Notes: generated by a model not told the origin, from the letters alone. Numbered from the whole stretch's first letter, positions 106 to 26,165 are shown. The stretch is 62,907 nucleotides of DNA, filler included, from Bipalium vagum (GCA_037834085.1; 3 parts of 3 records of this genome joined end to end with filler, not necessarily neighbours in it), one strand, 5' to 3'. Program-made: numbers and translations.

Positions 106-1242
106 TATTATCATTTTTGATAAGTTTAGTATACTCACAAAAATAGGTTATTAATATCGCAACCTTATTATTCATTCTTTATACATTTGGAATCATTGAG
201 TTGAGTCAAGACTATTCTTCATCTACTAGAATAATTCATAAATAACTTAAAATTTTTCGTTGCTGAAAGATAATTTCTGATGACTCAAAACATTCTATGG
301 GGTCAGTTTAAAGTTACGACAGCAGAAATGATCCGAAAAATTCATGCTAAGATAAGTGTTCTATACTGTCCAATATCCAACTGTTATCACATCCACCATA
401 TTATCCAAATATAAGTCAGTCTCACTTGCATTTTATCTCAGAATTTTAAAATAGCGTGCACATAGAAAATTCCAATTCACTTATGAAGTTATCCATGAAT
501 CAAATTCCTATTTTGAAAGTATGAATATATTGTAATACAAAGATGGAATTAAAACTAGAGAATAGTTAGATAAGGTATGAGAACCAATATAAAGATGTTT
601 TTAAAAATACGTTTTCGTAAAAAAATAATTTCTTATTTACCTTTTTAGAAATACTTCGTAACATCAAAGATATTTATTTTGACTGGAATTGGTCCATTAA
701 TAATCAATCACTAATGAGAATATAAACAGAAATCTAGTAAAAAGTACAGTGTATTGTAAGTTTCTGTTGAACTCTTAAGACAACTCAGATCTCTTTCTCT
801 CTGTCTATATATATTTCCTGTTTGGCTTTAATTGAGTTAATTCAATTCGTTATGGTTCTTTCTTACTCTTTAAAGATTTATTGTTTTGACTTTATAAAAT
901 AAAAACAATAGAAATGTTAAATAATAACTATGACCACTAACGGAAATCTAGATTTTCTACCGACTTTAACATTGTAAATATTTAAAGTTACAATGCGAAC
1001 TGAAAATAAAACCTCAGCGTTAATTAAATTCAGTCTTGTACAAAATTATAAAGTCTTTTTCTAATCCACGTTAATAATTAGTTTATTAATTAATTTATTC
1101 ATTTATTAATAAATAAATTGGTGAAAAATTTTGGTTCATAAAATCAATAATCAAGAGTTTTTTTAATATTTATAAAAGTAATTTTTAATCAATCCACTGA
1201 AAAAAGTTTGAATTTACTCTGTAAATATTAATATTGTCTAAC

Positions 1243-1567
1243 CTCCATAATTCGGTTGTCTACCACTGATCTGCTTAGAAAAGTTTCTGACAAATATATC
1301 ATACCCAAGATTAATGTTGTTGACAAAAATAATTGGTGTATCGTCTTTATACAAAGTAATTATAGGACCATACTTCGGAATATACTTTTTAATCATTTTT
1401 TTGTATATTAAATTTTCATTCAAGATAAAATCAGCTTCTTCGGAATTTTTATTAGGACCAGGAGGCAAATTATGACTTTTTAATGTCACTTTGACATTTT
1501 TCATCTTTTCTTCTTTTATTTTTTTTGCCCGTTCAATCATATCTTTTGCGGATATATTTTCATTCAT
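1243..1567 (-). CDS. Cytochrome P450, first coding exon (remaining exons not identified in the window)
   Basis: Has the LPPGP hinge followed by KYGPIITLY...PIIFVNN...YDIFVR...SGR, the standard CYP N-terminal beta1/alphaB pattern. The ORF ends at a probable donor GGAG|GTTAG. No heme-binding exon was found. Confidence 0.75.
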
Positions 1568-6195: not shown

Positions 6196-9100
6196 TCATT
6201 CCAATTTTTTTCTACACATTTGACAGAAAGGATTTCCGTTATTTGGATTTTGAAAATTACACCCCCTAATATAAATTTAAATCAATTAGAGGATGTACAA
6301 AGAACTTCAGAAAACATACTTGCAATGCAATGGCTTCACATTGTTCATAAAAGGAACACGAGGCATGTGACCACCAAAACGCAAAGAATTCGGATTCATA
6401 AAAGATGCTGCCTGTATAAATATTAATCGGAAAATCAGAATAAAATATTCATCACGTTATTCGGTGGATTATTTTGAAGTGACATCACCAAACTGGCTGC
6501 CATATTTCTAATGAAATTAGCTTGGTTATCCATTTTAGATCGGATATTGTTTGGTCCTCCTTTTGTTTCATTCCGTACTGGTTGACCTGGCATGCGAGCT
6601 GAGCTAACTGGAGGTAGACTGTAAATGTTTTGACCAAATTTCCCATTGGCATTCATCTTTCGTTGTTTGTTCGATGTTCCATCGAATTTATTTGATCCTT
6701 TATTATTTGCATTAGCCTGCTTATTGGCTTGTTTAATTGAACTTAAAAATATATTAAAGTAATATTATTATCAATCCTCAAATATTATTAAAATGGCTAA
6801 ATCAATTAGTGTGTAAGTGTATCAGATTTTGCTCCTATGATTTTTTAACTAACAATTTTTGATAATTCAAGTTGTATGGACATTGTAAGAATTATTATTA
6901 ATTGAAATTTTCCTAATATTTTTTTACTTTACCTGAAAAAAAAGTAATACCACGAGACCTTTATAATAAGCTATGGTGAACTAATATATAATTATTGATG
7001 TGGAAAGCATAATACAAGAAATAAACTTCCCAGGTTGGTTTTAAAGCTCTTTTAAAAATAATCATTAGAATTTGATTATTATAATATTGATTAATTAAAA
7101 TTTCATTAATTTAAACACTTCTTAATTCTTATTTAAATTTAACCTATATTCTTCTTTCAATATTTATTGGGATCAATATATATCATTTGTTAAAAATATT
7201 TTTTTGAATTGTAATTATATGGTTACCTTATTGACTTTATAAACTTTAATTAGAATTGTTTTTGAGCCATTTTATATGATAAAATCAAAGTTAATTTGAA
7301 ATATTTTACGGCTTTTTATAAAATGAACTAAACTTTTTTATTTATTTAACTGGAACTCGTGAAAAATATTAATTAATATTTGCAAACAACCGATATTTTG
7401 GTTAACAGAGGAAATTCTGTTAGTCTTTCAAACAATTTGGAATGAGTAAAATTTACCTATTTAATTTATCAGGTCCCGCTACCTTGGTGGTATCTGTTTG
7501 AAGATTATCAACAACTGTCTCATCTTTCGTTTCTGAAATTTATACAATGATATTATCTATTAAAAGATGAAAGAAAATTGAGTTGAAATAAAAATAAAAG
7601 ACAGAAAAATGTGGAGTATTTAATTTGATTTTTAAATATATTTATTACTTCGACATTTATTTCCCAAAAAATATTAATTGATAATTAACATCATGAAGCA
7701 CATTTATTTAAACAACTTGACAAAATAATAATTCATTATTCTTTATATAAAAATGATTTGAATCTCAAAAAGATCGTAAAATTCCCTTTATGAAAGATTT
7801 TTAAAAAGTTATGTTAAAAAACCATTATTTTTACAAAAAATAGGTCAACCAATTTTGAAGTTAGTTTAAATAAAAAACAGCAACGAAAGTTCTTTAAAAA
7901 TTAATTTTAAAAAAGACCATTATTTATATTTTAGCTTTGATAAACATAGATGAAATTGATTAATTTAATAAAACTATTAACAAACTAAAACTATATAGAA
8001 AGAATTTTTTATTAATATAATAAAATGCAGAGATAAATGCCAAAAGAAATTTACTAGATATAAGAAATTTAATAATGGTGCTATTGAATTGATTTTAAAT
8101 TAATTTAGAGCGAAATATAATTCAGTAATTTTTTATATTTAAAATAGTTATTAATTAATTAATTTGCAGAATTCATTCTTAAATATCACTTTTTTTTGTT
8201 TTAAGACTGCTAATAATATGTGCAAAAGAAGAAAATCAGATGAATTGAAAAATTGAAATAATAATTGATTTAATTAATTTTTAACTTTAAAAAAATTAAA
8301 ATTATAATTGATGGCAATAAGATTATTTTCAAATGGAAAATCAAAATTTCTTAATTTTACTAATTAAATCGAAGTAATCATTTTCAAAACTGATAATAAA
8401 TATCTAGAGATATTATTTTAAAGGCAAAGGCCCAGTTTAATAATATGAAATTTATTTATTCAATTTTTCAGTTTTTAAAAAATTAAAATTATAAGGAAAC
8501 CAATAAAATTATTTTAAATGGAGAATCAAAATTCTTAGAATTGGTTCATTCTCCAGAAGCATTACCTTCTAATTTTCTTTTAGTACCACTTTTTTCTTTA
8601 TCATTCGATTCAGTGTTAGACAACACTGAGCTAGCGATCTTGATATTATCATCTGGACTTATATTTTCAATTTTTTCTTGACTATTTATATCTTTATGAG
8701 ATTCAAAAATGTCAGGGGTAGATGAAACATTTGTTATTGTGTTTAAACTGATTTCGATGAATTTGTATCCACGAGAAAAGAGACTAGAAGATATTATATC
8801 TACACTATCAACTGCGTAGTCCATTATGTTGCCTTCATTAATTCCTCCACTAGCTTTGATTAAAATTGAAGAATTGGTCATTTTTACCTGTTTTGATATG
8901 CACCTGATATCCTAAATAGAATGGATAATTTCGCTTAATAATTAAGGATCATCCACTAATTATCAAATTAATGAAATTGACCAAGAATCTATAACTACAT
9001 TGTTGGAACAGATAATACTAAATAAATACCATAACTTAATTATCATTAAAATAATTATCAAATTACTTTAACAAAATTAATAAAATATTGATTAAAAATA

Positions 9101-11387
9101 ACTGTTAATTTACGATAAATAAAGGATTAAAAATATCCCTTTTCATTACATCTGCTTTATTGATAAAAAATGGTAATTTTAAATATTAACTATTCAGCAT
9201 TTAAAATTTTGATCAATTAAATTAATTTAAATCAAAATAAAACAACGTGAAATTTTATGTAATCATAATGAATTTATAAAATAGATAAATACGTTAAAAC
9301 ATCAATTTTTCAAGAAATATAACTTCGCTTCAAAAAATAACTTCATAAATTTTAATCACTGAAGATAATTGAGAATTAATACTTTGAATCAATTATAAAA
9401 TCGATTAATACAAAATTATTTTAATAAAGTACTTGGAAAGGTTTTTAAAAAATCAATATAATCTGAAAAAATATCAGTTTCATAAAGAATAACTTAAGAC
9501 TTAATCACCCATTCAATGGTTGATGATTAGTTGGTAATGTACAAGATACATTAAGCAAAGTAAATTTTGATTTAAATATTTTAAAAATAGATGTTTACAA
9601 TAAAGCATTTTATTAAGAATGCCAATGATAATATCAATAATTAAAAATGAATATAATCTAAAAAATAACTAGCCAATAGAAATTAGATAACATTATCTCA
9701 CTGGGTGAGTCATCGTGTTAATCATAAATATCAATTTTCCCAAAATAAGAATAATTTCGGAAGACTTCGTTTTGTTTTCGTACCAAAAATTAATAAGTTT
9801 AAATTTGATTTATTACTTTTATGTCCCACCTGACTGAATTTTTTAGAACTAATAAATTTAATAAAAGTAACGAGATGAAATATACTTTGTTAATCACAGC
9901 TTTTTAATAATCATACAATTAAATAATAATCTAAATTAAAAATTTTAAATTATTTTTTTTAATTAATTATATTATGCTTGTAACAATCAATAATTGAATA
10001 TCTAATACGTAAATTCGTAATTAAAGAAAAATGTTAATTTATCATTGAGGTTTTATTTTACAATTAATTATTACTAATTATTTTCACGAGCATCATAAAA
10101 AGAAGTTCGATAACATAATTTACTCAATTATTATTTTGTTTAGAATTTAAATGTAATACTTAATTAAACTCATATTTTTATTAGATGTAAAATAATCTCA
10201 GCAATATAATTCAATTTAGAAATTTTAATATTTGTCGTTTTATCCAAATCTTAATAATATATTGATTAATTATGAATTAAGACTTCACAGTTAACTTATT
10301 ATAGCCCCCCCCCCCTTTTTATATTAGCTCAATGATAATTTAATTTTTTGTGTTTATAAATAAAAGTAAACATTAAAAAGTTATTTATAACAGCTAACAT
10401 TTCCTCACTGAATTATAGATGGATCGGTAATCAATTAATCAACTGATCTATCAGTAATTTAACAATGTTCTTAATTTTATTACTTTTATTGATTTCTAAT
10501 ACCGTTCTTTAGCTCATTATTTATTTAAATTGTCTTCTGAATGCTTTGGATATAATTTTGTAGGTTTCAATGAAACTACATAAAATTGATTTTATATAAA
10601 AATAAAATTACGTTAATCATACATTATATATATATATTCAAAAATATCTTACGTTTATATTAAGATTTTTCAATGTAATTAAATCAGCCCCGGATCGGGC
10701 AGCCTCTAAAGCATCATTTAAATTTTCACAAACAACTTCAATTTTAGTTAATTTCGTTCCTCTAGATTTCAACAACTTCAAACTATTCTCAATGCTGCAA
10801 TTAGCATTAATACAGTTATCCTTCGTAACGGTTAAAATGGACTGATCATGTTTATAAATTTGCATTCCTCCAACGTACATAGCATATTCTTCAACAATTT
10901 TAAATCCCGGAGTCATATCATCAGCTCCTATTATTTCACCGTTCCATTTTTGCTTTAATTTCGTTAAAGTCGAATTAACAGTTGTTGCTACACTAATTGC
11001 ACGAGTCATTATATTCATAACTATTTTTTCCGCCATTAGAATCTTTTTTGTTACACCCGTTATGATACCGACTGTTGAAAAACTATTTACAACAGATCCT
11101 TCGGAACACAACCATTTGATTTTACAATCAAAGAATCGTAAAATTTCATCAACAAATGGTAAACCCGCTAAAATACCTGAAAATTGAAAATCATTACTTA
11201 TAAATATAAAATCAATAATTTAGTAATTACCTGTTTCTTTAATATCAAGATTTAAATTGATAGTTTCATCATTATTTAGGATGGCTGAGAAATCAAAGTT
11301 TGGCAAACTTTCATTTATCCAAAATTTGACATATTTTTTTAGGAGAACAGGATTAATTACATCAGAAAATTTTGTAATAGAAGCCAT
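6196..11387 (-). CDS. QPRT: Quinolinate phosphoribosyltransferase (QPRT/NadC)-like protein, probably catalytically inactive, with a C-terminal C4 zinc ribbon; 7 exons, 516 aa
   Basis: Exons 11387-11231, 11176-10653, 8911-8566, 7532-7457, 6741-6456, 6411-6320 and 6265-6196; all introns GT-AG, phases consistent, total 1551 nt. QPRT-like motifs: GILAGLPFVD, WLCSEG, MTPGFKIVEEY, KDN, KIEVVCENL.DALEAARSGAD, KASGGI, VDIIS. Ends HCKGCNFQNPNNGNPFCQMCRKKLE*. Confidence 0.88.
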
Positions 11388-12450: not shown

Positions 12451-13099
12451 CTATTATACATGTTTAGTTAGTGCCTTCTTCATTATAATTAAACATGAGT
12501 TTATTTATATAGTATGCTTATTAAGTAACTAGTCATTCGACTACCTTGGGTTTACTGGGATAATTCTCAATTGATGGATAACTGATCAATCTACTGGTTT
12601 CCAGATCTTGGTTCTGGTTCATCTTGAGTTGAGTAGCTTCTTCTTGGTTTAAAAATTTTCATTAAAGATTTTTTCCATTTTCCGGATTTATATATTTCCC
12701 CTTTACCAGTTTTATATCTATTCTATATATTTTTTCTCTATAGGTATTATAAACTAAATTTTATGATATTTCTTTATGTATTTATACTATTTTTCTATCA
12801 TGTGTGTTGGTGCTACAACGACTGTCATTAATGTTTTCAAATGACGTTTCTCCTTTTAATTTTTTGACTTAATTATTCATCCTATACTTAATTACCTGAT
12901 TAATTACTATTTTAAATTATTATTATTACATATTTATTTTTAAGAAATTAATTTATTACTATTACTATTACTATTATTATTATCATTCTCTAATATTATT
13001 GACATGTTTGTTGTTTGACATGAGTTTGTCCATTTGTCAAAATTATGAGATATTTTTATTTAAAAATTTGTGTTTTTTATATTTTTATACCGGATACGG

Positions 13100-13220
13100 T
13101 GTTGGGGTGGGTGTTTTGATTCGAAAAGGTTGAGAAGAGTTACGGACATAACGATTTATAAAAAGTGAGGAGTCACTAGCACACGAGCACAAGTTACTAG
13201 GTCGAAGTATAATAGTAACA
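13100..13220 (+). repeat. Putative 5' LTR of the Gypsy element
   Basis: TGTT...AACA termini, internal TATAAAA, and directly followed by a PBS-like sequence. The left boundary is uncertain because there is no second LTR to compare. Confidence 0.55.
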
Positions 13221-13222
13221 AT

Positions 13223-13246
13223 TGGATAGCACCCGACGTGATTTGA
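13223..13246 (+). promoter_or_regulatory. Primer-binding site, degenerate tRNA-Trp type
   Basis: tggatagcacccgacgtgatttga resembles TGGTGACCCCGACGTGATTTGA, the complement of the eukaryotic tRNA-Trp 3' end; it starts 2 nt after the LTR-terminal CA. Confidence 0.6.
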
Positions 13247-15655
13247 GTTTGGTTTGTGATTTGAGGAACAGTTGTCGAACGACCGACGGTAAATTTTTGA
13301 GATTATTGTAAAAATTGGAATATTGAGATTTTTGAATTTTCTGGCCGACGTGACTTGAATCGGATATTGTGTGAATTTTTGGTGATTATTGAAAGACCTG
13401 TGTGGCAAAAATTGGAGTATTTTTTTTGGAGGTTTTGAACTTTGTGCAAAGGCCAATGAGAATTGAGTTGTCAATTTTGGATTCGAATAATTTTGTGATT
13501 TATGATTATATTTTAATTAAACTTTAAGCAATTTATGATTGACCTAAATTTGACTAAGTTTTCGAACTTGAGGGTGGTCTTAAATTCGAAGAATGTTATG
13601 ATTTTTGATTTTTGTTATATTGATAAAACATGAGTAATTTGGATTTTTGTAAGTCCTGTGTGTGCAGAAAATTTTTTTTGTTTTTTTTGGATTTGATAAG
13701 GTTTTGGAAATTTTTTGTAAAGCCCGGCGAGGTATAAAAGTTCGTTTAAAAATTTTTAAGTTATTTATCTTTTTTTTTGAGATTTCATTTGGTTTTAGAA
13801 CTTTTTGTAAAGCCCTGTTAAGTATTAAAGTTCGTTTAAAAACAATTTTCTTGATTTGATTGGACCTGTGTGGTATTGACAAATTGTTTGGGATTTGAGC
13901 TTTGGACATTTGTAAAGTTCGTTTTTGAAAAGTGTGGCGAGTTTAGGAGGAAGGAAATCGAAATTAGAACAACAGAAGAAAGTAGAAAGTGGTTTGCGAA
14001 AGAGAACAACTAGAGGCTCAACGGGATTAGCTAATAGTCAATTGGAAGAAGAAAATTCGGAAAGTAGAAGCTCAGATTCGAGTCAAGGACAAGGATCGAA
14101 TCAACAAACGATTCATGGATGCCCATGATGTTAATAATGGTCATGATGTTTTTGAATATGATGAACAGATCGAATGCATTGGTAGCATACGATTGTACGA
14201 AGACAAAAATGGGAAAAATATATTCGTTGATAGATTTGGAAAAATGCCCAGAAGATTACCTGACAAATTTAACCAGCAGAGACGTATATTAACATATTTA
14301 TCAGGAAACGGAATTTAGAAAGGCGAACGTGAAGGAATATATCGTTAAGAAGGCAAAGTTTGAGTATTTTTTTTGGAGTCCATAGTATAACGGCTTTTTT
14401 GGAAGTAACATTGATACCAGTTCCAGTGATTGACAATTCCAAAAACTGCAAGTCAGCCTTAGTAACAGGGAAGTTACAGATCGCAGCAGGGCTAGCAATT
14501 GATGCAAAAGTCGGTGTAAGAACTCGACAAGCCATAACAGAAGGAGGAAACATAGAACCAGATGGCGCATGCACAGGCAGAGACAAATATAGAATATGCG
14601 ATAAAGTAGCCTAGGTGGTCACTTATTCGAAGAGTGATTTGTGGCTCCGGTTACCAGAATTTTATTAGAAAAAGATGCAAAACCGAAAATTCTAGAGTGT
14701 TGGTCAGCTATGTCGCCCATAAACAAAATAACACAAGATGTGTGGATAACTCTACCAGATAGAAAAGAGACGATTAAGGTAAAGAACCTGGAGTTGTTAA
14801 AGACTGAAAGGGGGTTGAAGTTTGAAGATTTGGATGAATTGGCATCCAGAGGAACCAATGGCACCAAAAGATACACATCGTTAACAGGATTTCGGGAATT
14901 AGATTCCAGAATTAGAATTAGATTCCTATATGTATGACGAGATACCAGGTGAAGAGACTGGTTTTTTAGAGGAAAAATTACCCGAACAAGAGTTGGATGA
15001 ATGGGAAGTAGTCAGATTAAAAAATGCTCGCGTGAATATGCTGAGAATAAATGATCAAAGGAAGCACAGGACCGATGATAAAAGCGTGGTAAAAGTGAAG
15101 ATCAATGGCCAAGTGTTATCAGCATTAATAGATTCAGAAGCAACAGTATCGATAATTAACAAATTTTTAACAGAGGGAGAAAGGAATAAGATACAATCAG
15201 CACCAGGAGCTCAAGCAGTAACAGGCCAGAATTTTGAGTTTGTGGGAAAAGTATTATGTGCAGTGGAACTAGGTGGTCACAGAATAGAGCATGGTCTGAA
15301 GGTAATGGTCAACTGTCTATATGATGGATTGATCGGAATGGACATTTTATTGCAGTTTCAAGGCGTAGGGTTTGATTTAGTTACAGGCAATTTGATACCA
15401 GTTCAAGGTAGTAGAGGCAGAAGATGAGCCGTGAATGACATAATATTAAATGAAAATGTATTATTAACATCAAGAGCAGAAACAGTTTGTTTCGTGACAG
15501 CGGGAATTCAAGGTAAAGAGGCAATGCACTTCAAGCCCAGCATTGAATTGAGATGGTTACATGGAGCAGTAGATGAAGTAGTACTAATCAGAGATGGAAA
15601 GATACCCATAAGGGTTGTGAACTTTGACGTTAAGAAGAAGCAGTTGTAATCAAAC

Positions 15656-16513
15656 ATGAGAATTGGCCAGTTACAACCATTAACGGATGAGCCATATGCA
15701 GATGCGATCAACGTTTTGAAGCCCAGTTCAATAAAAAGGTATAAACCAATAGTGATTACATGTCAGAATTTGACAGAATGCCAAAGAGAATGCATACAGA
15801 GAGTAATAGCAAGGTATGATAGAGTATTTGCTAAAAATGATTACGATTTGGGTTGTACTCACATTCTAAAATATAAAACTATTCTTACGGAGTCAACCTC
15901 AATCAAGCAAAGAGCATATCGTCAACCTAATGCGTTGGAAGACGAAATTGATCAACAGATAAAGGATATGTTGGAAATAGGGACGATTGAACCGAGTTCG
16001 TCACCTTGCGCATCACCTGTCGTAATGGTTAAAAAGAAAGATGGCTTGATAAGAATGTGTATTGATTACAGAAAAGTAAATGAAGTTACGAGAAAGGATA
16101 CATATCCAATTCCAGTGATTGAGATGATGTTCGACAAGATCAAGAGGTCGACAATATTCACAGTGATGGATCTTCAGAAGGGTTATAATCAAGTTGCTAT
16201 GGATAAAGACAGCAAAGAGATCACGGCGTTCGTAACGAGCAAGGGATTGTATCAGTACAACAAGATACCGTTTGGATTGACAGGATCTCCAGAAACGTTT
16301 CAGAGATTGATGAATCTGATATTAATGGATGTTGAACATGCTATGGTCTATGTGTATGATATTATAATATTTTCTATCAATGGTGATGAACATATTAAGG
16401 ACATAGCAGCAGTGCTGCAAAGATTGAAAGTAGCAGGTCTGAAGGTAAAGCCTATCAGGATATTACAGAAGATTTATCAGAATTTATGTCAAGATAGCGA
16501 CACAGTTGAGTGA
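15656..16513 (+). pseudogene. Gypsy reverse transcriptase fragment
   Basis: RT motifs are present, but catalytic YxDD reads YVYD and the frame breaks after LKVKP. Confidence 0.9.
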
Positions 16514-18793
16514 TTTACTGAAAGGAGAAAGTAAAGCGCTGAAGAGAAAAGCCAAACGAGAAAAGAGAGTAAATATAATCGAAAAAAAAGTAGATAAAAT
16601 CGTATGCGGAGAAGAGCAACAAAAGGCTTTTGAACAATTAAAGGAGAGGTTAATTCGACAACCAGTATTGAGATACCCAGATATGACAAAGTCATTTCTA
16701 CTAATGACGGACGCTAGTGGATACGCGGTTAGAGCAGTATTAGCCCAACAGGTAGAGGGAGAAAAAGACCACGTAATAGCGTACGCTAGTAGAGGACTGA
16801 AAAGCTCGAGCTGAATTATGCGACGATAGTGTTTTTGGTGAAGAAGTTCAAGCAATCTTGTGGGGACGTAACACTATTTTATTCACTGATCAAAGCCCAT
16901 TACAGTGGTTACTAAAGTATAGAGATACCGCTAGTAAATTGATCTGATGGGCATTAATACTACAAGAGTATGATATCGAAATAGGAAGGGGAAAGCCAAT
17001 GCCACAGTACCACACTTTATCGAGAATGAGGCAAGAGGAATTATCACAAGAGGATGCGTAGCTCACTGACGAAGATAAAACCGTCAGTGGTCAGAAGAGT
17101 AAATTTGATTGATTCACGAAAAGACTATCAGAAAGCTGATGACGAAATTGAGTTAATCAAGTGATGCATGAAAGGAAATGTTCCGGAAGATTGGGTAAAG
17201 AAATGGGAAAAGTTAAAAGATAAATTTTAAATGAAGAAGGGAGTATTATATTTTATCAGAAGTAAATATCAGTGCTACGTGGTACCGTTGATGATGCAGT
17301 ACCATGATGGAACACTTGGATGTCACCTGTCAGCTAGGAAAACATTGTCAAGAATTACGAGCAAATATTTTTGGCCAAAAATGGAACACGACATTAGAAA
17401 TTGGTGTCAGTCGTGTAAGATTTGTCAAACCCGGAGAGGAACAGGAGAAAGAACTAAAGTACCACAACTCCTGCAACACCAATGGAAATGGTGGCAATGA
17501 AAGTCGTGGGGCCGTTGCCAGAAACGATATTGGGAAACAATTTTATAATTGTTTTATGTGACTACTTTACTAAGTGGCCAGAAGCGTACCCAATGAAGGA
17601 TCAAAAAGCAACAACCATAGCTAAAATCTTTGTAGAAGAAATCAGTTTTCGGTACGGCACACCAAGGAAATTATTGACGGACAATTTTATGAGCGAGCTG
17701 ATCAAGAAGATATGTGTGCTATTTGCGATTTTGAAACTTAATACGTCACCGTATAGACAGCAGACTGATGGGTTAGTAGAGAGGTTCAATAGAACTCTAC
17801 TCAAAAAAAATAAAAAATATTTGTAATTGATGATTGTAGATCTCCTCCACTTTTTAAAAAAAACTTGGATATTTTTCATGAATTCCTTGAATATTTAAAA
17901 CTTTTTTAGCTCTTATGTTATATTTTTTAAACAGTTTTTAATCGTATTTTCCTGATTACTTATATTTTTTGAGATGTATTTTTCACAAAATTCAATATAC
18001 CATTTTGATCCATTTTCTAAGAAAATAAATTCATGGATTGATATAAAAAATAAATGATCTACTCTCCGTAGCTGTTATAAACGTCTTTTGACGATAAAAT
18101 GATGAAACTCATTAGAAATCTATCCTAGTTGATAACTAGATATTGAAAGAAACCTGAATTTCTCTAAAAACCACGATGCAAGATATCAAAATTTTTAAGT
18201 TCAGCTTAAAGAAATATAATTAATATAGAAGCTTCTTAGCTAGAATTTGAATCTTAATAACTTCATGGTAGAAATTTCGAGAGATATATCTTGATAAAAT
18301 AAGAAATAAATTATTCTGAAAAAATGTTAGATACATGAATTTCATAGCATAATTATCTCGCCCAGATTCGAAAATAGAAGTATCAGGAAGTTGTTAAAAA
18401 ATACCGGTTTCCATAAAATTTATACGATTAACAACAGCTGTGATATCAAAGAAATCAAAAGATCGAATGAAATATGAGGATAAATCAAACAATATCCAAT
18501 AAATGTTTTTTATCAGAAGACATACTTCGACTTCTTGAAGATCTAACAAGAAATATTAATCAATAGAACTACTTTTCTTTTTTTTATTATTGAGTGACAA
18601 AAACTACTGAATTTTAATTGCATATTTGGAATGACAGATGGTCGATAAATATAATCAACAGAAAATATATCAAATTTTATAATTGATTTTCAGTAAAAAG
18701 ATACAGAATTTCCGGATACAGAATCACATACCAAAAAATGTTAATATCTCTGATGATTTTAATGCAAATCTAACAAACTTTGTTTTAAATATA

Positions 18794-19890
18794 CACAACT
18801 GGAAAAAAAAGAGGCTCACACAAAATATACATTTTTACAAAAATGTTTAAATTGGTTAACATTTATTACATTTTTATGTAATATTTAAGGTATTGCACTT
18901 AATATGTATGTAATTTGGTGTTTTTGTTCTGTTTGTTTTAATAATTCAAGTAATAAATAAAATGACTAAGACACATTTAAATGTCGAAATAAAAAATCGG
19001 ACATAATGCCTTTGTTACACAAAACTGTCATATCCTGAAATGTAGAATATTTTGAAGAAACATGGTATTCAAATTCCATTATCCACAATACAAAGAATTG
19101 GCTACCAGTTCAACACAACAGGTTCTGTAAAAAGAAAATCAGGCTCAGGCAGATCCAGAAAAACTACAAGTCGAGATATCAATAGACTGAAATTTGATGT
19201 CATTAAAGATCGTAAGAAAATTATTAAAAAATTAGCTGAGGAATTCAAAAATGGAAATAATGAAACAGTTTCTCAAAAAATTGCAAGACGAGTCAAAAAA
19301 TTGGGGTTTGTATCTATGCGTTGTGCAAGGAAACTATTTTATTCAAATAAGAATATTAAAAACAGATTACATTTTTATAATCTTTACGCTATGTATGATT
19401 CTCAGTGGTTCCAATGTGTGTTCTGGAGTGATGAATGTCGATTTGAACTTCATAGTGATGCCCCTGAACGCTGTATTCAAAGATCAACTAAAAAATATGT
19501 AATGGAATTTATTTCCACCTAAAAAAAATGGCGCTGGGGGAATTATGGTTTGGGGAATATTCTCAGCATCTGGAGTTGATGAGCTTATACGATGTATTGG
19601 GTCAATTAATGCCAAAGAGTTCCAAAGGATATTAGATATTGAATTGCTTCCAAGCTTCGAGAAATTATGCATGGAAAATGAAAGACAATGTTATTTTCCA
19701 AAAGGACAATGCACCGGCGCACACAGCAAAAAAAACAAAAGCATGGTTGAAGAAAAGAGGTGTACCGGTTATGTTTTGGCCTGAACAATTGCCAGATCTT
19801 AATCCCATTGAGAATTTATGGGCAAACATAAAGGCAAAACTAGCCGGGAAATTTTTCAATACTTCTGACCAACTGTGGAAAGCAGTCGAG
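18794..19890 (+). mobile_element. Tc1-like (DD34E) transposon, degenerate, right end missing
   Basis: TA|CACAACTGG left end. HTH with SGRSRKTT; VFWSDECRF; MVWGIFS; FQKDNAPAH followed 34 aa later by E in PDLNPIENLW. Stops and frameshifts present. Confidence 0.92.
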
Positions 19891-20586
19891 ATATTTTTTT
19901 CTGGTGAAACAACTTTTCACATTTCCGTATTTGTGAATAAGCATAATTGCCGATGATAGGCATCAAGTAATCCTTCACAACCGTCGAATTTGTTTAAATT
20001 CCAGCCTAAGTTAATACATGTTTTGCAATGTCTTGCACTCAAATCATTGAACCATTCTTTTTTGAAGATAAAACAATCAATGGACAAAATTGTCTACAAA
20101 TCCAATCATCCAACGAAAAAGACTTACTAATATGATCATCTTGCAACAATATGGAGCTCCGGCACATTTTTGCAAAAATGTTCGCGTATGGTTAAATGAA
20201 AAATTGAAAGGACGGTGGATTCGCAAAGGTGATCCAATATCTTGGGCATTACGTTCTCAAGATCTGACTCCACTGGAATTTTTTCTATGGGTTACATTAA
20301 GAAAAGCATTTACAAAACAAAGGTCCATGGCATTGTCGATCTAAAGAACATGATTTAGCAAGATACAAAGTCCATAAAAAAGAAATTACAAACAGTTTTT
20401 GATGGTATTGTAAAAAGAATTAAGATTTTGTATTGATGTTAATATTGACACTTTAAAGCAGTATATGTAACTTTTTATATGAAAAAAAACTTTGGAATGT
20501 GATTTTTTAAAAAGTTTATTTAATTAGGTAAAAAAAATAAAATGCATATTAACTTTATTTTTAGATATGAATTACCGGACACCCTA
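19891..20586 (+). mobile_element. 3' part of a DD41D (rosa/Visitor-type) Tc1/mariner transposon
   Basis: FFSGETTFHISVFVNKHNCR (cf. FSDEATFHLSGxVNKHNCR); LQQYGAPAH...WALRSQDLTPLEFFLW with 41-residue spacing; ends ...ccggacaccct(a)|ta, like a CAGGGTG-type TIR. Confidence 0.85.
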
Positions 20587-20795: not shown

Positions 20796-21529
20796 TCAAT
20801 CGTAATAGTCGTCGTCATTCTCATTATTTACAACTTTATAATTACAGTGTGAATTGTTAACGGCATCGAGCTGACTTTTTTCCACTGAAATCTGTTGGAG
20901 ATCAACGTCATTGGCTGTGGCTTCCAATTCAAATTGTGCTCGTGCCTGAAAAGTTGTTTTAAAGCTTTTTAGGGAGAGTTTCAAAAATACTTGTTCAAAC
21001 ATTTTCTGTTGCAACTCAACCATTATTTGATAATCCTCTTCTGTCTGATGTTGAAATTTAAAACGCGATGTTTGAGCTTTGCGCAATTTGACTTCTTCCC
21101 TTGCCTCTTCACTGGCACTTTTCGCTATTTCTTTGTAATGATTGAGGCCCATCATTTCCAGACCTTTATTACATAAACAAAGTTGTGAAAATAATATTTT
21201 TTCAATTTTATTTCATAGTTCTAATTAATCAAGTTATTTTATATAATATTTTTCTTATGCTTAATAAAATATAGAATATCTGATATAAATATAAAGAAAC
21301 CTGTGAGTATATGTTCAGCCATTATAGTCTTCTTACTTGCTTGATTACAAGCTAAATTAGCTTGACCAGCAAGTTTGTGTATAAATTCATGACTTATTTG
21401 AAGCATTAATTCTCGAGCTTCCAAAGTCAAACGAGCTTCTGGTGCTGCATCTTTAATTAGTTTGTTTAGAGCTGCTCTAGGTAAGCTTACATCCTCCTCT
21501 TCTTTGGCAATCAAATCGGCTGGGTCCAT
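20796..21529 (-). CDS. DR1: Negative cofactor 2 beta subunit (Dr1 / TBP-associated phosphoprotein), about 183 aa
   Basis: Exons 21529-21301, 21163-20991 and 20945-20796. Histone fold EEDVSLPRAALNKLIKD...EARELM...EFIH...ACNQASKKTIMAEHILTGLEMMG, followed by LQQKMFEQAR and an acidic tail, as in Dr1. Confidence 0.93.
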
Positions 21530-22679
21530 CCTAAATATTTTCACTATGAATTGTAATATCAATTTAAAATTTTAAAATATTTAATTAAATTTATTTATAT
21601 AAATGATTTACAAATAATTCAAAAGATACCCAAAATTAATTATTTAAACAAAATCAAAATATTATAAAAAATACTTATAATTAAAACTCAATTTGAGCAG
21701 TCACAAAAATATATATATATATATATTTTTTATATATATTAATTATTAACAAAATTTATGATTATAAAATTAATAAATGCTATATACTGAATCCTATCAT
21801 TTTTAATTGAATATTAACTGAAATATTTGTATCATATAAATTAATTCATAATTATTATTCTTTTAAACCGATTATATTTGTATAAAATTTGTTGTTGCTA
21901 GGAGTATAATGAAAAGAAATATATACAAATATAAATTTTTTAATAACTAAAGAAAACTGAATTATAATAATAATACTGAGTAATTGTAAAATGTAGGGAC
22001 ACAAATTTGATTCTTTATATTTTTTAAGCTTTGAACTAATAACTACAACTAGGTTGATAGATGGAGAGATCAAGGTTTTGAAGCTTATCTTTCGATCAAG
22101 TTTTTATTCTGAAATTAGTATGTTCAAGGTAATACACTTGTGTGCGTCAGATTGTAGTTTTGATTACCGTTGTTTGGTTTGCATAACAACCTTTCAGTAA
22201 TAAATATGTTAAATAAGTATAACTTGAATTAAAGTTAATCTTTATACTCGAAAATGGATCTAACCCGTTACTCGCGGATGGTGTAATAACCAGTTGGAGA
22301 ACACAGTAAGTCAATAAAAATAATGATGGACATACAGCACACAAAATTAAAACTTTTTAAATTAATGTTCAGATATTCAAAATGTAAAATCAGTAACGGT
22401 ATATACTTGGAAAATCAATTCCTTTAAAGTTAAATATGATTAATAATATTTATGATTGCTTTGAACCAAATGACATCAATTAAAATGGTCCTGATTTACC
22501 CAGTAACATAAATATTTGAATAATTTTTTTATTTATTAAAATTTAATCCTTACAACAATAATAAGTTATTAATCAGTAAATATACAAAAAATATTTCACA
22601 AATTATTTAAAAGGAAATAAATCAGAAACTTGATTCCAAAAATTATGAAAAAATTTTGAACGATTTCGGAAATATTCTA

Positions 22680-25844: not shown

Positions 25845-26165
25845 ATGAAAGGAAAGGTCGCCTTCGGCTTAGGAGGATTATATCCTCCAATAGCTTTAGG
25901 ATTAGGTTTACCAAGAAAGTCAAAGATTCTCTCTAATGAAAAACTTTTCGAAAATTCAAAAATTCTTCCTCATGAAAAAAATAAACAATTAGCAAATGAA
26001 CTTCATAAAGAATTTAGAAAAACTAAAGATTTCCTAAAAGTTAAAGTTAATAATAAAGATTATATTTGGTCTGCAGATCTTACATTTGTTCCTGGAGAAA
26101 AAGATTATAAAATAATTCTAATAGTTATTGATTTATATACTCGTTTTGCTTTCGCTGTTCCTTAA
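25845..26165 (+). pseudogene. Polinton-type integrase N-terminal fragment
   Basis: LANELHK...WSADL (first catalytic Asp)...IVIDLYTRFAFAVP, then truncated. Confidence 0.85.

Follow-up and report, generated by a model that had tools for sequence, protein, structure and literature searches.

Quinolinate phosphoribosyltransferase (QPRT, NadC or BNA6; Pfam PF02749 and PF01729), a type II phosphoribosyltransferase, is a stand-alone enzyme of about 290–300 amino acids (aa) with an N-terminal alpha/beta domain and a C-terminal barrel. It makes nicotinate mononucleotide (NaMN) from quinolinate and phosphoribosyl pyrophosphate and pairs head to tail, its active site lying at the interface. In the complex of pig QPRT with NaMN, Arg138, His160, Arg161 and Lys171 make up a basic pocket, the phosphate is bound by Lys139, Asn223 and Gln274 together with the backbone of Gly249, Gly250 and Gly270, and the ribose is bound by Glu201 and Asp222 (PMC3633916). 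Schistosomes are without de novo NAD synthesis, no de novo enzyme having been found in them and tryptophan having failed to restore NAD after NAMPT was blocked (PMC7252647). When the SH3 domain of SmTK3, a Src kinase of S. mansoni, was used in a yeast two-hybrid screen, one of the nine groups of clones was a 1.7-kb 'Qprt' cDNA (PMC2734992). Here, a QPRT-like gene was analyzed on the minus strand of a 62,907-nt stretch of Bipalium vagum DNA (GCA_037834085.1; three parts joined end to end, filler included; hereafter the window). Its predicted product carries the QPRT fold, a long low-complexity linker and a C-terminal zinc ribbon, and has very likely ceased to be a working QPRT.

The gene was read from the sequence as seven exons between 11387 and 6196 (Table 1). 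All introns run from GT to AG and the phases fit. Exon lengths of 157, 524, 346, 76, 286, 92 and 67 nt add up to 1548 nt, or 516 codons, which bore out the stop-free seven-exon frame of 516 aa proposed in a first-pass annotation of the same DNA. Pfam scans and homology searches of the gene were run exon by exon. Exon 2 matched QRPTase_N (1.3e-9) and QRPTase_C (2.9e-15) and exon 3 matched QRPTase_C (1.2e-7; profile positions 115–168), all above the curated cut-offs; no family matched exons 1, 4, 5, 6 or 7. Exon 1 could be aligned to the N-termini of the close relative P0001 and of fluke proteins. The fold stops about 57 residues into exon 3, giving a QPRT part of about 285 aa where about 290 had been estimated. 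The remaining ~230 residues, an extension that canonical QPRT does not have, are of low complexity, rich in N, S, K, P and Q, and end in C-x2-C-x11-C-x2-C, the first Cys being encoded in exon 6 and the other three in exon 7. The linker, the TKRK patch and the terminal motif described in the first-pass annotation were all seen in the exon translations. If intron 3 were retained, the product would be short, about 350 aa, and would lack the zinc ribbon. Canonical relatives have in common with the window gene an intron before the last third of the barrel. The locus is very probably a real gene with the order QPRT fold, linker, zinc ribbon, as judged from its sequence and the comparisons below.

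Active-site residues were compared at nine positions, numbered as in the QPRT crystal structures (102, 138, 139, 160, 161, 171, 201, 222 and 223). Exon 2 was matched to the pig (4I9A) and human (2JBM) QPRT chains at E 3e-28 and 31–35% identity. In canonical animal QPRTs (Nematostella, Biomphalaria, Protopterus and the close relatives P0001 and P0159) the nine sites are invariant and read R, R, K, H, R, K, E, D, N. The window protein reads K, D, D, Y, K, K, V, K, N. Seven of the nine are thus replaced, five of them non-conservatively (Arg138 to Asp, Lys139 to Asp, His160 to Tyr, Glu201 to Val and Asp222 to Lys). Within the carboxylate pocket (138, 160, 161 and 171, with Arg102 contributed by the partner subunit), Lys171 alone is unchanged; among the ribose and phosphate ligands (139, 201, 222, 223, 249 and 250), Asn223 and the SGG loop are retained. 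The TPGF part of the active-site loop is also kept. The changes of Arg138 and Lys139 to Asp and of Asp222 to Lys are charge reversals in the dicarboxylate and pyrophosphate pocket. Because the side chains that hold quinolinate, phosphoribosyl pyrophosphate and NaMN are replaced, in part by opposite charges, the protein is considered a pseudoenzyme that should not make NaMN. We regard it as very likely that the window protein is not a working QPRT, and retained catalysis as improbable. A second copy in the same assembly reads K, N, I, Q, R, D, K, E, N at these sites, and flukes and tapeworms each have a different set again. This variation of the pocket by lineage argues against a conserved small-molecule ligand. 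Columns that are invariant across the family are mostly core and interface positions and include the TPGF loop.

Relatives were searched for with exon 2 among 1.8 billion representative proteins, which returned QPRT-like proteins of about 510–550 aa with the QPRT part at the N-terminus. The order QPRT fold, long low-complexity linker, terminal zinc motif was found in predicted proteins of 429–577 aa from seven fluke and tapeworm species (Dicrocoelium, Calicophoron, Paragonimus, Fasciola, Clonorchis, Mesocestoides and Schistosoma japonicum, the last as Q5DCL6); Opisthorchis, Hymenolepis and Protopolystoma were represented by fragments only. Their terminal motif is of the type C-R-x-C-G-x-x-N-x5-F-C-R-N-C-R. 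A zinc motif was present at the C-terminus of six of 154 fetched homologues, all from flatworms, and also in a Mesocestoides protein fetched later (P0155), so far placing the family, on the sequences at hand, in flatworms only. The S. japonicum protein has a SJCHGC clone entry that we take to stem from a cDNA project; fold and zinc ribbon would then lie on one mRNA.

These parasitic-flatworm proteins share with the window protein the degenerate fold, a predicted disordered linker (about 200 aa) with a basic patch, and a terminal C-x2-C...F-C-x2-C-R. A basic cluster followed by an acidic residue is likewise present in the fluke and tapeworm tails. Fold identity to the window protein is, however, only 34–36%, the linkers can be aligned only in short motifs (R-[ML]-P-G-Q type), and the spacer between the two knuckles is 10 residues, against 11 in the window protein. 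The window copy keeps more canonical features (K-D-N motif, SGG loop) than they do but is without Glu201, which most of them keep. A further difference is that the nearest relative of the window protein, P0001, is catalytically canonical.

A phase-2 intron lies in the codon after Cys1 in the window gene (AA/G, the slash marking the intron), in the second copy (AA/A) and in Clonorchis (AG/A). Sharing of its position and phase within a four-residue knuckle is hard to explain other than by common descent. The Mesocestoides corti gene (UXSR01000080.1) has no intron within the zinc ribbon. When 773 segments were searched with a profile built from fluke and tapeworm tails, the zinc exon of the window copy ranked first, and both it and its counterpart in the second copy scored better than any of the 759 other open window segments (E 0.003–0.05); exons 5 and 6 went undetected (E 8.6 and 31). 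Since exons 5 and 6 were missed, likeness of the linkers is claimed only for architecture and short motifs. An alignment of the separate window exons with one fluke protein, used to search for further long relatives of the window lineage, returned only the five known fluke proteins. Exons 4–7 were assigned to the QPRT-fold gene because of four comparative lines, namely the recurrence of the architecture, the second copy, the Clonorchis intron and the tail profile; at the level of sequence we conclude that they belong to it.

The second copy was found on two contigs, with exons 1–4 on C77683 and exons 5–7 on C223299. It has all seven exons, each with the borders and phase of the window gene. 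Amino-acid identity between the copies rises toward the C-terminus (exon 1, 48%; exon 2, 53%; exon 3, 62%; exon 5, 63–65%; exon 6, 72%; exon 7, 77%), exon 5 matching at E 5e-29. Exon 4 of the second copy (L005 1329-1254, C77683) is of the same 76-nt length and phase with the same AG and GT borders, and is strongly diverged in sequence. The basic patch reads C-T-K-R-K-I-E in the second copy, and a stop is again reached six read-through codons past the exon 3 donor. A 1-nt frameshift lies in exon 2 within a short A run (L005 ~4957, C77683), the remainder being open, and may be an assembly error or a recent lesion. Ratios of non-synonymous to synonymous substitution (dN/dS), suggested as a check by the first-pass annotation, were computed between the two copies and came to about 0.17–0.28 for the fold and 0.14–0.26 for the tail, values that are rough because dS is saturated; omega was well below 1 in both halves. 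The comparison of the two sequences places the tail under purifying selection, conserved at least as well as the fold.

A search of the assembly, which is fragmented and may mix organisms, found only these two QPRT-like loci and no canonical QPRT. A second, canonical gene had been suggested as something to look for; the second locus that turned up is non-canonical. It may be a paralogue, a homeologue, or an orthologue from a co-assembled relative. The label 'paralogue' is not asserted because at least three intact COX1 genes, and also a second exon of the NC2-beta type, are present in the assembly. The three COX1 genes are mitochondrial and different from one another, on C253947 (L015), C246471 (L016) and C253320 (L017). 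All five AAA codons of the L015 gene stand at sites that we take to be conserved Asn sites and an AGA at a presumed Ser site, presumably reflecting the flatworm/echinoderm mitochondrial code. The NC2-beta-type exon, normally single-copy, belongs to a histone-fold gene of the window (Table 1) and has its second copy on contig C268776 at 87% identity; the assembly may accordingly contain two related genomes, or the gene may have been duplicated long ago.

A tree of the exon 2 region (83 sequences, 179 columns) was made by a quick method with support from the SH-like approximate likelihood ratio test (SH-aLRT). The window copy, the second copy and P0001 formed one clade (99), placed as sister to a fluke and tapeworm clade (95), and the node joining the two had only moderate support (84% SH-aLRT). 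Branch lengths were 0.14 for P0001 and 0.84 and 0.61 for the window and second copies (six- and four-fold longer); fast evolution also sets the window protein apart from canonical QPRT. P0001 retains all nine catalytic-site residues and is known from a UniParc entry only, its closest relative being a single genomic exon on a 954-bp contig. Accessions for the canonical relatives are UPI00060A7121 and run SRR33002330. The tail would have been gained on a still-active enzyme in an early flatworm, and catalysis would then have been lost separately in parasitic flatworms and in the window lineage. Such a tail-first history is the most economical one because the tail and its intron are common to the window lineage and the flukes.

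Structure was predicted with AlphaFold2 for the orthologue P0041, using the family alignment. Residues 33–282 formed a confident QPRT fold (predicted local distance difference test, pLDDT, ~90), residues 283–484 had pLDDT below 50, and the last ~28 residues formed a small beta-hairpin element (pLDDT 60–84). The best match of the model in the Protein Data Bank was human QPRT (2jbm; E 5e-28, target TM-score 0.86). Prediction of a homodimer of residues 1–285 gave a score of 0.35 against 0.00 for the best control, which may reflect memory of solved QPRT dimers; among proteins solved as pairs 21 of 30 came up to the mark used, and among those solved as single chains none of 23. Contacts were at least 83% common between runs, partner pLDDT was at least 80, and the invariant TPGF loop lay in the interface. 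The oligomer prediction suggested by the first-pass annotation was in this way made for the orthologue, as a putative dimer of the QPRT type with the same possibility of model memory.

The terminal motif was compared with known zinc fingers. Pfam scans of the C-termini of six orthologues gave sub-threshold matches only (DUF7577 at 5e-5, Zn_Ribbon_1, DZR and zf-ChsH2). The RanBP2/NZF finger (PF00641), proposed in the first-pass annotation as a model to try, gave no match on the six orthologues at E up to 10; the scan covered the orthologues, since the window finger is divided by an intron and was not scanned whole. RanBP2/NZF fingers also have four Cys in two knuckles and an Asn four residues past Cys2, and in TAB2/3 such a finger stands at the end of a disordered region, a position like that of the ribbon here. 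They differ in having a Trp before Cys1, a spacer of 10 and a T-F pair that binds ubiquitin, whereas the window ribbon has neither Trp nor T-F and a spacer one residue longer. In common with Zn_Ribbon_1 (PF13240), DZR (PF12773) and DUF7577 (PF24463) is the pattern C-x2-C-G-x8-9-F-C-x2-C-x-x-x-L; matches to these families lie below the curated cut-offs, and the families are mostly prokaryotic and without a defined ligand. A search of the ESM Atlas with the tail gave no usable match by features, and all structural neighbours had TM below 0.2; the nearest of these, leads only at that score, carry Zn_Ribbon_1, DZR and DUF7577 families. Because there are sub-threshold zinc-ribbon matches and no zf-RanBP match, 'zinc ribbon' is the level at which the element is described.

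Taken together, the favoured reading, somewhat more likely than not as a whole, is a QPRT-derived pseudoenzyme whose oligomer forms a platform and whose tail and zinc ribbon do the work. The dead fold would still pair like the enzyme, as a dimer or perhaps a hexamer, and the oligomer would be a platform presenting several copies of the tail. The basic patch would act as a nuclear localization signal. The Arg/Lys-rich zinc ribbon and the Pro/Asn-rich linker would make multivalent contacts, most likely with nucleic acid or ribonucleoprotein (RNP), or else with signalling proteins of the SH3 type. Considered separately, the platform with the tail as working end comes close to evenly balanced, with doubt slightly ahead, and nucleic acid as the ligand is a tentative choice, on the unlikely side. 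Since schistosomes keep the gene though they are without de novo NAD synthesis, its retained role there lies outside that pathway. An insert of 1.7 kb, as in the 'Qprt' clone, has room for the long form, and it is plausible that an SH3 domain binds the proline-rich tail. The repurposing proposed in the first-pass annotation (a co-opted QPRT fold fused to a disordered linker and a zinc ribbon) found support in that the catalytic residues are replaced, the tail is under purifying selection, the gene is kept in schistosomes and a dimer is predicted for an orthologue; an NZF-type finger that binds ubiquitin found none, and the unconserved pocket argues against the suggested sensor. We think it rather unlikely, though worth stating, that the protein is a multivalent nuclear or RNP scaffold whose tail, while on an active enzyme, coupled NAD-precursor metabolism to regulation, the second function alone then keeping the gene in parasites that have no pathway.

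Several points weigh against this reading. Loss of activity is judged from residues, and the exons of tryptophan 2,3-dioxygenase (TDO) and 3-hydroxyanthranilate dioxygenase (3-HAO) in an assembly where no canonical QPRT was found leave room for residual or altered activity, with the reservation already made about the assembly. These exons, and those of a NAPRTase-family enzyme, were found on contigs C123127, C140156, C119541 and C221268; the steps upstream of quinolinate may therefore be present in the organism, and the exons may also come from more than one organism. The exon 3–exon 4 junction is placed by comparison, so that there may also be a short isoform that terminates at the 8546 TGA. 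The predicted dimer is that of P0041 and not of the window protein, the zinc ribbon matches sub-threshold Pfam models only and its ligand is a guess, and the linker has no significant similarity to fluke linkers, the zinc exon alone matching, and weakly.

A QPRT that still works, its site rebuilt from remaining and replacement residues (Lys102, Lys161, Lys171, Asn223 and the SGG loop) and its tail regulating or localizing it, would make use of quinolinate, which TDO and 3-HAO could supply. Several binding elements are indeed retained, neither of the two QPRT-like loci in the assembly is canonical, and loss would have to be recent given the fully canonical P0001. This explanation is nonetheless very unlikely, in view of the charge changes at 138, 139, 201 and 222, none of which varies among canonical enzymes between cnidarians and vertebrates, of the different residues found there in the second copy, as would be expected under relaxed constraint, and of the long terminal branches; the pathway genes may come from some other organism within the assembly, and 3-HAO can also feed the ACMSD branch. 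A metabolite sensor, in which the remodelled pocket binds a small molecule (quinolinate, NaMN or another) and the signal is passed on through the tail, seems to us similarly improbable, because lineage-specific residues at 138, 139, 160, 171 and 222 misfit a shared ligand and most of the family-invariant columns belong to the core and the interface. In its favour, the prediction of the barrel is highly confident, and pseudoenzymes that retain ligand binding are a known class.

A main transcript that stops at the TGA at 8546, with exons 4–7 unused, rarely used or part of another gene, would account for the stop six codons past the donor in both copies and has a parallel in Mesocestoides P0019, an alternative model of 296 aa that runs on into the intron behind the QPRT part. 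Exons 4–7 are, however, open, match between the copies in phase and splice sites and show the strongest conservation; seven further species have predicted long forms, and the intron in the zinc knuckle is common with Clonorchis. We therefore think two separate products or genes highly unlikely, while the long isoform may well be accompanied by a short one. Decay as a pseudogene after loss of de novo NAD synthesis fits the lost catalytic residues and the 1-nt frameshift in exon 2 of the second copy, yet scarcely deserves credence for a window copy that is open over 516 codons with intact splice sites, has omega well below 1 in both halves when compared with the second copy, and belongs to a family kept across flukes and tapeworms.

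Table 1. Positions of the QPRT-like gene and of other features in the window (minus-strand features are given 5' to 3' of the gene for the gene itself).
Feature	Position	Strand	Description
Exon 1	11387-11231	-	ATG at 11387; 52 codons + 1 base; N-terminal helix of QPRT N-domain
Exon 2	11176-10653	-	QPRT core, 174 full codons; end of QRPTase_N and first two thirds of QRPTase_C
Degenerate active-site loop	10928-10902	-	GADDMTPGF; canonical G-[ST]-R-K-T-T-P-G-F
Exon 3	8911-8566	-	Last third of QPRT barrel (~57 codons, SGG loop kept), then start of linker
Basic patch	8587-8567	-	G-T-K-R-K-L-E; resembles a nuclear localization signal; directly before exon 3 donor
Exon 3 donor	8565	-	GTAATG
In-frame TGA	8548-8546	-	Six codons into intron 3
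Exon 4	7532-7457	-	76 nt, linker
Exon 5	6741-6456	-	95 linker codons; conserved hydrophobic stretch near exon end
P-x-x-P-x-R motif	6590-6573	-	In exon 5; also in second copy
Exon 6	6411-6320	-	End of linker and zinc-ribbon Cys1; donor splits next codon, phase 2
Zinc-ribbon Cys1 codon	6324-6322	-	In exon 6
Exon 7	6265-6199	-	Rest of zinc ribbon (C-x11-C-x2-C, F-C-x-x-C-R core)
Stop codon	6198-6196	-	TGA
Open reading frame	1238-1567	-	L-P-P-G-P motif like cytochrome P450 N-terminus; no Pfam match
GC-richer block	13000-18000	+	35-38% against ~25% elsewhere; pol pieces of a long terminal repeat (LTR) retrotransposon over several frames
Reverse transcriptase	15656-16513	+	LTR-retrotransposon piece; RVT_1 4e-27
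Integrase core	17482-17826	+	LTR-retrotransposon piece
Transposase, Tc1/mariner type	19052-19956	+	Split in two open reading frames; HTH_Tnp_Tc3_2 2e-6, DDE_3 3e-13
Histone-fold gene	20796-21562	-	NC2-beta/Dr1 or NF-YB type; CBFD_NFYB_HMF 1.7e-16
Integrase-core fragment	25845-26165	+	rve 1e-3

Other features of the window are listed with the gene in Table 1.

The architecture, unfamiliar to the first-pass annotation, is not unique, as it stands in public databases for parasitic flatworms in sequences automatically named QPRT or nicotinate-nucleotide pyrophosphorylase. Full-text searches of the literature turned up neither a QPRT pseudoenzyme nor a QPRT–zinc-ribbon fusion described from flatworms; the proteins are regarded here as a pseudoenzyme derived from a metabolic enzyme, with a new domain architecture. 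The label nicotinate-nucleotide pyrophosphorylase in the genomes of flukes and tapeworms of medical and agricultural importance conflicts with the inability of schistosomes to make NAD de novo (PMC7252647), and recognition of the pseudoenzyme removes this conflict and corrects metabolic reconstructions. On this reading the family offers a clean case of passage from enzyme to scaffold in which the gain of a domain would have come before what seems to be repeated loss of catalysis, and a canonical close relative is at hand for comparison. It is flatworm-restricted and conserved, and the one experimental hint is binding to the SH3 domain of a Src kinase that is expressed in the gonads. RNA interference works in planarians as well as in schistosomes, so that function is directly testable. 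If the scaffold reading is true, the gene would be an essential, parasite-specific, non-enzymatic target hidden under the name of an enzyme.

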